A stretch of 63,234 nucleotides of DNA, the filler included, from Platydemus manokwari (Eukaryota): NCBI GenBank assembly GCA_037951405.1. It is 5 parts of 5 records of this genome, joined end to end, with 100 filler letters (N's around TTAATTAATTAA, not from the genome) between each part and the next. Parts side by side here need not be neighbours in the genome. Positions count along the whole stretch, not along the records: positions 9,590 to 23,115 come from JBBMOY011696955.1; 4 more parts are not named here. The stretch is one strand, 5' to 3'. The notes beneath the pieces are model-generated. The model ran no database searches. It saw nothing but the letters and a program-made list of their open reading frames with translations, and had not been told where the DNA came from. This document shows positions 17,276 through 22,000 of the stretch, piece by piece. The position numbers and the translations under genes are program-made. Each line of letters begins with the position of its first letter. The stretch's first letter is position 1.

Positions 17276-17565
17276 TCAGTCTTTTCTTAGACAAGCACTG
17301 TATCCATCGGTGCATTTCTGGTAACATTCTGCATCGTCTTTCGCGCACGATGAAAGGCAGACGAAACCAGCATTGTAACAGTTTTTAGTCTTTGTGTAGC
17401 TTTGTGAATCGAATTGTTGATCGATATCTTCATTCTGCTGACCCGGAGACACAGTGAATGTGCTTGAAACAATAAAAACGACCGAAAACAGAATAATAAC
17501 CTAAAATCATGATGAATTGATTATAAAATATGTGCAAAATATAATTATTCTATTACCTTCATCAT
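17276..17565 (-). CDS. Secreted six-cysteine peptide precursor, copy 1 (exons 17557-17565, 17276-17500; 77 aa)
   Basis: ATGATGAAG/GTAATA..TTTTAG/ gives MMKVIILFSVVFIVSSTFTVSPGQQNEDIDQQFDSQSYTKTKNCYNAGFVCLSSCAKDDAECYQKCTDGYSACLRKD*. It has a hydrophobic N-terminus and the same Cys spacing and intron position as copies 2 and 3. Not present in the ORF track. Confidence 0.85.
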
Positions 17566-18004
17566 ATTTATTATTATCTTTTATAATATTATCGATGTGG
17601 AAATCTTCTTAAATACTTTCGAGTTTGACGTGAATATTTATTGCGAGATCGATAGGTGCAAATATTTCTTTTGTATTTCATATTGGTTTGGAATAACAAA
17701 ATCGTGATTTCTTAAGTGGAAATTCTGTTATAATAATATTGATGTTTATTCAAAAACATTATCCCATTCAAAGCTTTTCCATAAGAACTTGATTGATTGA
17801 ATATCGATAGAGAAACATTTGTTTATTTTTGTTTTTGAATATCTTTCATATACTGCGAATGCGCAACGATTCGTCATTATAAAAACAACTTATTTTGTCG
17901 GTTATATCGGTTATATATTTACACAGAGCTTTATAACAATTCTACTCGTTGAACTTATATTCATTTAATAAAAACCTCCAGCAATCATTTTATCGTTCAC
18001 GTCA

Positions 18005-18353
18005 ATGATTAAGGTTCATTTTGTACTTATTTTCATAAAATTTTTTTACTTCGTTCCTTATTAAGATTGTTATTCTCTCATCAATGATGTTGGTATCGAT
18101 TTTATCGGAAAATATCAATGAAAGTCGGAAAGTTCTTGAAAAAATGGAATCAGATTATTATAACAATGATCCAAACGAATCGAAAGGTGATGTTCAATTC
18201 ACATATGAAGATATTAAAGAATGTTACAACAATGGATTCCGTTGCAATCACAGATGTAAACCGACAGATCGAAAATGTTCAGAGAAATGTAAAGAAGGCA
18301 TAAAAGAATGCAAAAAACGACTCAATGCTGAACAATTTCATGACGACTTATGA
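18005..18353 (+). CDS. Secreted six-cysteine peptide precursor, copy 2 (exons 18005-18013, 18066-18353; 98 aa)
   Basis: MIK/IVILSSMMLVSILSEN...FTYEDIKECYNNGFRCNHRCKPTDRKCSEKCKEGIKECKKRLNAEQFHDDL*; 52-bp phase-0 intron. Confidence 0.88.
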
Positions 18354-18670
18354 ATGTGACAAATACTGCATTGATATTGGAAAATATAATTGAATATTTG
18401 ACAAGATTTTTGTTGATGTGTTATGGATTGAGTTAATATATAATTTCTCACATTATATATAAAGTTATATTCTAATAGTCCATGTATTATCAATTGTAAA
18501 GGATTTATGACATAATGATTACCTAATAATACTCTCAAAACAGACTCTTACACTAAGGAATATATTTTAATTTATGTCGATTTAATTTAATTATAAATCA
18601 AACCAATATGCACAAGAGAAAATCTTTATATCAACCCAATGTTCCACATATTTTTCATTAGATTTTATAC

Positions 18671-18728
18671 AAATTTATACAAAATAACAAAATAGCACAT
18701 TTCGCTGTTAAAATGTGACCTCTTGAAA
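18671..18728 (+). repeat. 58-bp exact direct repeat, copy 1 (copy 2 at 20567-20624)
   Basis: AAATTTATACAAAATAACAAAATAGCACATTTCGCTGTTAAAATGTGACCTCTTGAAA occurs identically twice. Confidence 0.9.
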
Positions 18729-20759
18729 TTTCTGATATGTTAAAATTGTTGTTATGTGAAAGGATAGGTTCGTTTATATCAAGATACAGCAGTGGAAACC
18801 ATTCAAGACTATTTTCGTGACATTAATGATAGTTCTATTCAATTCTGTGAATATCTATTGGTAAATATTTCATATCTTCAACGTAGCTGATGGCTTTAGG
18901 TGGATCAAACATTTGTTGCATTCATGTACTGAGATGGATTTAAATTTGAATAATATGGTAATAATTTGTGGTGTATTTATCTTTAATGTGATATTTCTAT
19001 CAGAAAATATCCATCGATTTAGCTCAAAACATATAAGAATATTAAAATAAAACTTAGTTAAAGTCCTGGTATACATCTGATGAGAATACACATACACTGA
19101 CAAAACGACTCTCGATTTGACCTACATCACCTAACAATACACAAGACTAAAAATTGTACAAGAATTATGTTCCATCAATTTTATATTGAAAACACGGGGA
19201 GTCACTGATTTAAATACACACCAAAATCCAGTATATAAGTAATAACTGCAAATTCAAATTTATTTATAAGCACAATTCATCGATTTTTACCCGTGCATTG
19301 AACGAAATTTTTTATGGATTTCTGATTTTATAATTAGAACATAATTCGTACAACTCTATCTATTTATCATTCGAGTTTTGAATGCTCTGATGTGATTAGT
19401 TTTTATTATTGGTACCTGGTTTGATCAAACATTCTATGTGATCTATGAAAGTTTATTTGTTTTATATCTGTGATTCATTATATCTCAGTTTTGATTTCAT
19501 GTTTTATGTTTTCTTGATGCTGTTATGGCAACATAAATATATTTTGTCAATTTCATACCATTCGAATTATATTCAGATTCACGTGAAATATAATGGCTAC
19601 ATATATGTTGGACATTAAGGAATACTAAAATCCTATTTGAGTTTGTGTCATACAATTGCAAACCGGAGAAAAAAATTTTTTTAAACAAAACATTTTATTA
19701 AAAATTATAATTTTATAATATATATGATTCATTGAAAAACTGAATGCTCGATTATTTTCTTTTCATGACAAAAATCATAAAACAAATCTCATCAAAATAA
19801 ATTTAAGCATTTCCATAAAATGATGTCTCGAAATCTTTAAAATAATTTCATTAAATTTTACTCGTTATTTCAAAGTTGATTTTTTTGGAAAAAAATTATT
19901 TTGCTTGAGTGGCATTTATTGGAACATGATCAATGAAGTGGGATGGATTTAAATTAATCTGATATATATATTTATAAATATCTTGATAAGTTCTATCAGA
20001 AATACATCATTTGATTCATCAGATTCATTATACGCGATTGTAATGATCAGAGATGGATGAGATTATCTGGCATTATACAGACAGTGAAATGTGTTCAAGA
20101 ATATTTATTTGATAGATTTATTTTTATAATTTTTAAATAATTAAATTTTTAATCTCCTCAAATCATCATCATTCGATTTAGACAAGAAGAAGAATTGCCA
20201 TAACAATGTGTGGAACAATAATCAATGGGTTATTTGATAAATATATGGAAATATTATTCGGTTATTGAACACATATTTATAATGAGAAAGAAATCGAGAG
20301 TTTCAGTGAATAATATTGAATGGTTTTGATAAAACTTTATCATAAATAATCCAGTTAATTAAATAAAATAATAATTATCAATCACTACAAATTATAATTT
20401 AAAATATAAAGTTGAGTTGTGCCTGCTATTTAAAGTGACCACACTTCTATGGTAATAGCTATGAGTTCATCAGGAAATAAAATTTGCTCATCATTTTGGC
20501 TCGTATCGAGCAAGAATTTTCAAATTGATAAAAAATATAATTAGAATATCAGATAAATATAAACAGAAATTTATACAAAATAACAAAATAGCACATTTCG
20601 CTGTTAAAATGTGACCTCTTGAAAATATATTTTAAATTGTGTTATATATTTGTAGATCCAAGATTATATGTTGTTTTTGAAGATTCAAGTCTCTTTGTTG
20701 TGTAGGATTTCATGTTTCGATAACATATAAGTGACCAAATAATCTAATCGGTTAGAATA

Positions 20760-21480
20760 TAAATTGGGGACTATGCTGACAACAAAACAAACCAAAAACA
20801 AATGCGGTGAACACTAACGGAAATATAAAATGCTTTCAATAAGAAAAATTTGATCACACAATAAGATCTATGAATCAACAAAAAATATATCTCCAAAGCA
20901 AGGGCACCAACCTACATATAAAGAAAAATCGTTTATCAGCAAACAAAAATTTACTACAATCGGACAATTGACACTGCTTTAACAGTTAAAATACGAATAT
21001 AAAATGAAGAAATCCGAAATAGAGCGTTTAAACCGCGATTAGTCCCTTATAGTACACACACAACTACGTACAGATTGATCTTATGACAGCCCATTTTTCT
21101 GTGAGGAGTCAATTTACGATTGTCTAGCAACAGTAATTTTAGAACAAGTAATACCAATATTTCTGTCAACAATGGCATAATCCACCTAGTATCAGACTGA
21201 GTTACAGCTATTATTAGATAGCGATGAGCAAGCAGAGGAGAACATTGAAGGTTGGAAACTAGATAGTGCAACAATTTATTTGCACACAAATCAAAAATTC
21301 AGAAAATAATTCAAGAACAATTTATTATTGCAATCTAGAATAACCTCGTTCACGCTGATAAGTGTCTAGGTGAGTTGGGATGTTTACCAGGTTCGATCAC
21401 TACAGTCAAAATATTCGAAGAACGATTAAGCAATCATTCGACGAAAGTCAGGATATCCATATCTGAGCATAAATCAGAAG
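20760..21480 (+). mobile_element. Possible decayed LTR-retrotransposon gag/protease remnant
   Basis: Fragments WKLDSA (protease D[ST]G-like) and GELGCLPG, typical of the Gypsy PR-RT junction; many stops. Confidence 0.3.
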
Positions 21481-21646
21481 AGATATTCTTACAAATGAAA
21501 CACGATCATGAATTGTTTTCATTGATATTGAAACAAATTATTTAATGTTATACATGATAGTGATAGATCATAAAATATAAGCAATTATTATTAGTAAACA
21601 TATCATATGAAAATATTATATAAATCCAATACATTTATTTCATGCA

Positions 21647-22000
21647 TTACAATTCATCAATGAATGCATGTGCATTGAGCTTTCTCTTGCAATCATTGAC
21701 TTGATCGCGACATTTCACTGAACATGGACGATCATTGCGATGACATCTGTCATTGCATCGAAATCCATCCATTTCACATTTCTTGATATCTTCAAATGTG
21801 AAATCGAGTTCCTTTTCCAGATCTTTCGTGTCAAGTTGTATTTTCGAATCGATCTTACCTGCAACATTGTTTTTCTGTTCATTAGCATTGCTATACACAA
21901 TCGCCAACATAACCATTGACACGATCAGTATTATCTGAATTATAAACGACCAATTAAACATTCAAATACAATCATATAATTATTCATTTACTTTCATCAT
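21647..22000 (-). CDS. Secreted six-cysteine peptide precursor, copy 3 (exons 21992-22000, 21647-21934; 98 aa)
   Basis: MMK/IILIVSMVMLAIVYSNANEQ...FTFEDIKKCEMDGFRCNDRCHRNDRPCSVKCRDQVNDCKRKLNAHAFIDEL*; 57-bp phase-0 intron. Confidence 0.88.

Follow-up and report, generated by a model that had tools for sequence, protein, structure and literature searches.

A candidate family of secreted six-cysteine helical hairpins encoded by two-exon genes in Platydemus manokwari

A stretch of 63,234 nucleotides (the window, filler included), joined from five records of the Platydemus manokwari assembly GCA_037951405.1, carries three small genes, here called G1, G2 and G3, which each encode one exact copy of the six-cysteine motif C-x6-C-x3-C-x6-C-x3-C-x6-C. 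All three lie within positions 17276-22000, in the piece analysed here (positions 9590-23115, from JBBMOY011696955.1; 13,526 bases, 29% G+C, no N). The genes have a clear two-exon structure, are conserved, show purifying selection on the cysteine domain and lack relatives among known families. We consider it fairly probable (roughly 0.6) that they belong to a lineage-restricted family whose products are secreted helical hairpins with three disulfides, built on a new cysteine framework.

Gene structure, relatives and selection

Gene models were drawn up by inspecting both strands and translating each second exon. The spliced products are 77 (G1), 98 (G2) and 98 (G3) amino acids long, with all reading frames intact, as the original prediction had proposed. 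The features are as follows.

17557-17565, minus strand: G1 exon 1, three codons (MMK), a mini-exon type common to G2, G3 and the metagenome contig described below
17501-17556, minus strand: G1 intron, 56 bp, GT..AG, phase 0, at a position common to the paralogs and the metagenome relative
17276-17500, minus strand: G1 exon 2 with stop; hydrophobic stretch, short acidic spacer, cysteine domain (motif 17291-17380)
18005-18013, plus strand: G2 exon 1, three codons (MIK)
18014-18065, plus strand: G2 intron, 52 bp, GT..AG, phase 0
18066-18353, plus strand: G2 exon 2 with stop; hydrophobic stretch, 30-residue acidic spacer, cysteine domain (motif 18222-18311), conserved C-terminal tail
21992-22000, minus strand: G3 exon 1, three codons (MMK)
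21935-21991, minus strand: G3 intron, 57 bp, GT..AG, phase 0
21647-21934, minus strand: G3 exon 2 with stop; hydrophobic stretch, spacer, cysteine domain (motif 21689-21778), conserved C-terminal tail

G1 and G2 are arranged head to head, with their ATGs about 440 bp apart (spacer 17566-18004), and G2 and G3 tail to tail, separated by 3.3 kb. The introns, predicted at 52-57 bp, interrupt each gene in phase 0 after codon 3, are about 80% A+T and contain in-frame stops. The string ATGATNAARGT occurs three times in the piece on both strands combined, against 0.2 expected, and each occurrence lies in the right orientation 52-57 nt 5′ of an exon that carries the motif. In G1, exon 2 starts with a hydrophobic run of 11 residues, no ATG precedes its cysteine domain, and the exon itself follows directly on an in-frame stop codon, so that only the spliced model yields a start codon and a hydrophobic N-terminus for this gene. 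A tblastn search of the family against the piece returned no additional or decayed copies, and Rfam and tRNA scans of the piece gave nothing usable.

The strict motif has exactly three matches in the six frames of the piece, one per gene, and none in 300 shuffles; the trio is real and far beyond chance. Four sequences can be compared, namely the three genes and a metagenome relative. Invariant among them are the six Cys, Lys two residues before Cys1, Phe two before Cys2, Asp three before Cys4 and Lys directly before Cys5. The GF that had been noted ahead of Cys2 is present in all three copies, at three and two residues before it, and reads AF in the relative.

That relative was found with a hidden Markov model (HMM) of the three domains, searched exhaustively against 1.84 billion representative proteins, in which a 77-residue protein (P0002, E = 2.4e-10) was the single true relative. 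A four-sequence profile used in a word-index protein search again returned this protein as the only match, while the same type of search with G3 alone returned none; in all, about 15 billion public proteins yielded no other detectable relative. It is encoded on an 815-bp ENA metagenome contig (L001; ERZ27257134 k141_2218781), where the DNA upstream of the called open reading frame (ORF) holds a three-codon exon (MIK), a 54-bp GT..AG intron and then the hydrophobic exon, followed by the same motif. Since this layout is that of G1-G3, the intron position is common to both genomes. Positions 630-725 of the contig carry a second copy of the family, 5′-truncated, which keeps Cys2-Cys5, lacks Cys1 and Cys6 and has Phe in place of Cys6. 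This copy is probably a decaying tandem duplicate, and the family is thus clustered in the relative's genome too; because of its truncation and its look of a decaying fragment, we rejected it as evidence for C1-C6 pairing.

The other three matches of the HMM search were rejected as false positives driven by repeats: P0001 and P0003 are translations of tandem repeats, and P0004, a protein with a signal and an anchor, contains a repeated C-x3-C-x6-C unit. Exact look-ups of four ORFs of the window in public assemblies returned no record. All copies gave noise only in Pfam and NCBIfam scans, two JGI metagenome scans, one GTDB prokaryotic genome scan and one IMG/VR scan gave no confirmed relative, PDB sequence searches with the single proteins and with the family profile (E up to 10) gave non-significant matches only, and a literature search on the cysteine motif in several notations found no matching paper. 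The view that the family is not a recognised one therefore stands across the Pfam, NCBIfam, PDB and protein searches. None of the public protein collections searched contains the genes, an illustration of how gene callers miss short two-exon genes with a three-codon first exon.

Selection was assessed by Nei-Gojobori counts, with G2 and G3 colinear over 95 codons. Their synonymous divergence (dS) is about 1.2, which makes the duplication an old one. The ratio of nonsynonymous to synonymous divergence (dN/dS) is 0.28 for the hydrophobic N-terminus, 1.10 for the spacer and 0.33 for the cysteine domain, so the domain is constrained and the spacer is not; core comparisons across all four genes gave ratios of the corresponding proportions (pN/pS) of 0.48-0.63. 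With shared motif, shared intron position and purifying selection on the domain, the three genes are real, conserved paralogs. The pattern of constraint is the reverse of a conserved signal followed by a hypervariable toxin, which weakens the toxin-like evolution suggested by the original prediction.

Predicted precursor and fold

In all copies, translation of exon 2 begins with a hydrophobic core of 11-13 residues, with a mean Kyte-Doolittle hydropathy of 2.7-3.3 over the first 13 exon-2 residues. A core of this length is more in keeping with a cleaved signal than with a membrane anchor, and the N-terminus of all copies, as had been proposed, looks like a signal peptide, suggesting secretion. 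The regular spacing of the six Cys, together with a faint match to a Pfam treble-clef family (E = 2), could instead indicate a metal-binding protein, zinc-ribbon or metallothionein-like, whose hydrophobic N-terminus is not a cleaved signal. We regard this as highly improbable, given that the treble-clef match is noise, that there are no His or Cys pairs at zinc-knuckle spacing, and that cleaved signals classically start in this way, with Met-x-Lys and then a hydrophobic core of 11-13 residues.

The spacers are acidic, with net charges of -2 to -4. Neither KR nor RR stands directly ahead of the cysteine domain in G1-G3, so that a dibasic processing site is absent, and the conserved residues immediately before Cys1 fall inside the first predicted helix; both weaken the idea that the spacer is a propeptide. 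For the domain, taken to start eight residues ahead of Cys1 and to run to the C-terminus, the net charge is +1 in G1, +2 in G2, +1 in G3 and 0 in the relative. Copies 2 and 3 are indeed rich in Lys and Arg, as predicted, but they are equally rich in Asp and Glu, and it is only in the 30-residue core that an acidic copy 1 can be set against basic copies 2 and 3 (-2, +4 and 0 for copies 1, 2 and 3, respectively). The proteins are thus charge-rich and not cationic, and a domain charge of 0 to +2 argues against a classic cationic antimicrobial peptide.

The C-terminal tetrapeptides bear on where the products would go. G2 ends in HDDL (18339-18350) and G3 in IDEL (21650-21661), which have the look of KDEL-type retrieval signals. 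These endings, together with a cysteine domain that is conserved and not hypervariable, would fit products that are retained in the secretory pathway or the extracellular matrix (resident in the endoplasmic reticulum (ER), or part of an eggshell, cuticle or adhesive) and are not diffusible effectors. However, HDDL and IDEL resemble the classical KDEL-type pattern without matching it, G1 and the metagenome relative end otherwise, and since all four C-termini differ, an ER-retrieval-like ending is not a family trait. Retention is therefore an unlikely account of the family.

For the domain itself, AlphaFold2 gave a helix-loop-helix for G1 (helix 2-21, loop 22-26, helix 27-42) with a predicted local distance difference test score (pLDDT) of 87.2. 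On an ideal helix, the spacings 0, 7, 11 and 0, 4, 11 each hold three Cys within 40 degrees, and the mirror symmetry of the motif would place the Cys of two antiparallel arms in register, which makes a nested pairing of C1-C6, C2-C5 and C3-C4 geometrically natural. Equally, the spacings 0, 7, 11, 18, 22 and 29 all fall within about 40 degrees on an ideal helix, as would suit one long helix with six Cys on one face that forms disulfide-linked, coiled-coil-like dimers or oligomers and no intramolecular hairpin. This arrangement is quite unlikely, as the central x6 segment contains an invariant Asp, plus Pro in G2 and G3, and the chain is broken at that segment in both AlphaFold2 runs.

Several results weigh against the hairpin reading. 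The model of the G2 domain is weaker (pLDDT 71.6; helix 5-13 and helix 27-52), breaking helix 1 after Cys1 and leaving Cys2 and Cys3 in coil, so that a helix-loop-helix is predicted for G1 and only in part for G2. Moreover, the alignments behind these models were shallow, with three sequences in the G2 run and four in the G1 run, and Foldseek gave no significant E-value against the PDB, all values being above 3. With that reservation, the best TM scores of the G1 model include two to disulfide-stapled helical proteins (4okv and acrorhagin I), which speaks for the hairpin. The top-scoring match was 4okv, the anopheline anti-platelet protein, with a template modelling (TM) score of 0.77 by query length, a root-mean-square deviation (rmsd) of 1.7-2.1 Å over 41 residues, E of 4-5 and 15-17% identity. 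Other matches were 3g6i, an outer-membrane protein of a putative carbohydrate-binding complex (TM 0.77), acrorhagin I (6ux5; TM 0.75 by query length and 0.68 by target length, rmsd 2.1 Å, E = 8.7) and 9bq3_E, a chain of an amylin receptor complex (TM 0.73).

Taking these data together, we infer the following course for a secreted, disulfide-stapled hairpin. G1-G3 are old paralogs, and each would encode a three-part precursor, consisting of a signal peptide, a poorly constrained acidic spacer and a cysteine domain of about 40-50 residues. Exon 1 would supply Met-x-Lys and exon 2 the hydrophobic core, whose 11-13 residues are too few for a membrane anchor; the precursor would enter the ER and its signal would be cleaved. 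The cysteine domain would then fold into two antiparallel helices joined by a five-residue loop, with the invariant Asp three residues before Cys4 capping helix 2. Because the spacing is mirror-symmetric (7, 4, 7 residues per arm), each helix would present three Cys on one face, in register, and the hairpin would be stapled by three nested disulfides. The result would be a soluble mini-protein, highly charged yet nearly neutral, and it would most likely act outside the cell by binding a specific target, in defence, in a toxin-like role or in signalling, and not by membrane lysis; the near-neutral charge and the conserved domain favour such a binding role over membrane attack.

A more specific proposal, which we offer tentatively and hold to be rather unlikely, is that the 6-3-6-3-6 framework is a previously unseen hairpin with a three-rung disulfide ladder. 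It would serve as a stable binding scaffold in a small, AT-rich, invertebrate-like lineage without known toxins or defence peptides of such a fold, with the paralogs having diverged toward different targets.

Upstream elements and surrounding DNA

When the regions upstream of G1-G3 and of the metagenome gene are aligned, all four share an invariant CGT within an ACGT core; a TATA-like box begins 10-15 nt beyond it and lies 39-51 nt before the ATG. The boxes in the piece, identified from this alignment, are as follows.

17609..17615, minus strand: TATA-like box of G1, 50 nt upstream of the ATG, a weak signal in AT-rich DNA
17966..17973, plus strand: TATA-like box of G2, 39 nt upstream of the ATG
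22045..22051, minus strand: TATA-like box of G3, 51 nt upstream of the ATG

The ACGT core and the TATA-like box may be a regulatory element common to the family, although signals of this kind are weak in AT-rich DNA. Downstream, AATAAA, a similarly weak hint, occurs 8-69 nt after the stop codon in G1, G3 and the metagenome gene. These elements bear on whether the genes function at all. No annotation or transcript record was found for them and their surroundings are repeat-rich, as might be expected of chance ORFs or decaying copies; against this, the motif, the place of the intron and the promoter-like elements recur in four intact copies from two genomes despite saturated synonymous divergence, and the idea that they are non-functional is close to refuted.

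The flanking DNA contains several repeats. A perfect 58-nt direct repeat lies between G2 and G3 (18671-18728 and 20567-20624, 1896 bp apart), and the ORFs between its two copies have no Pfam match. Farther away, positions 13620-14620 on the minus strand hold a remnant of a Mos1/mariner-type DNA transposon, in which one ORF piece matches Pfam HTH_48 (E = 2.9e-16) and the other pieces have no Pfam match. Its transposase frame falls into three or more stop-to-stop pieces, with at least two breaks, and the element appears inactive. By themselves, this remnant and the AT-rich introns of 52-57 bp would suggest a eukaryote with a small genome, perhaps a micro-invertebrate. Additionally, positions 9763-9883 form a purine-rich minisatellite with an 11-nt period, made up of eight overlapping 44-nt copies in 11-nt steps.

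Comparison with known cysteine-stabilised peptides

Plectasin, a fungal defensin, was the only PDB sequence match of the family profile, aligned from GF-x-C through C-x3-C-K, and it raises the question of whether the family branched off, with great divergence, from the cysteine-stabilised alpha/beta (CS-alpha/beta) defensins. However, its E-value of 0.88 is not significant and Cys3 is aligned to a non-Cys residue. Furthermore, the C-terminal C-x-C that defines the strand motif of these defensins is absent (there is no CxC anywhere in the G1-G3 proteins), and no beta structure is predicted. A defensin origin is therefore very unlikely. The mitochondrial CHCH hairpins (twin CX9C or CX3C, without a signal) differ from the family in cysteine spacing and in its hydrophobic N-terminus, and no Pfam match connects the two. 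Nor does the family have the conserved C-terminal retrieval tetrapeptide of KDEL-type ER residents. The anopheline anti-platelet protein (4okv) is likewise a secreted protein with a disulfide-linked helical domain, and its resemblance is one of fold only, to the G1 model.

The closest parallels in design are found among the disulfide-stabilised helical hairpins (CS-alpha/alpha), a recognised and apparently convergent class that includes scorpion kappa-KTx, conotoxin vil14a, neurotoxin B-IV, acrorhagin I and the plant alpha-hairpinins (PMC11722136, PMC6410017). Like G1-G3, the animal toxins of this class (kappa-KTx, acrorhagin I 6ux5, B-IV 1vib and vil14a) are made from small precursors with a signal-like N-terminus, and they carry CX3C on each helix, as in the helix-loop-helix predicted here. 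In the kappa-KTx type, two or three disulfides link the two helices through the paired CX3C, and venom-gland expression and channel activity are further marks; of these traits, G1-G3 have the paired CX3C, with the two helices predicted. The differences lie in the number of Cys and in processing. Kappa-KTx has four Cys, and acrorhagin I and B-IV have eight Cys forming four disulfides, whereas the present framework has six; moreover, the kappa-KTx precursor contains a propeptide with a basic cleavage site, whereas G1-G3 have a neutrally evolving spacer and no KR or RR before the domain. None of the named hairpin toxins was returned by the PDB sequence searches at E up to 10.

Plant alpha-hairpinins such as EcAMP1 and nigellin-1.1 are defined by a 4C motif, CX3C-X4-20-CX3C, and a 6C motif, CX3CX3C-X4-20-CX3CX3C (PMC11591084). 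The inner four Cys (Cys2-Cys5) of all copies satisfy the 4C motif with n = 6, and the predicted helix-loop-helix would likewise carry nested disulfides, but the 6C motif does not describe the copies, as the outer Cys are x6 away here and x3 away in plants (PMC11591084). The plant peptides are cut from vicilin-like or multi-module precursors, unlike the single-domain products of the two-exon genes described here, which have a signal-like N-terminus of their own. Sequence similarity is also absent, as searches with E up to 10 brought up no solved member, and the resemblance is most likely convergent.

As no named comparator was returned by sequence search, we assign the family to none of them, and the literature search found no published framework that fits the outer Cys pair at x6. 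The hairpin is a known class of fold (PMC11722136), so the novelty lies in the sequence family and its cysteine framework and not in the kind of structure. If the hairpin reading is correct, a new framework and an unrelated sequence family would join the growing set of disulfide-stapled helical hairpins, a fold that seems to have evolved separately in scorpions, cone snails, sea anemones, ribbon worms and plants, and its compact, symmetric three-disulfide design would be a candidate for a stable mini-protein scaffold.

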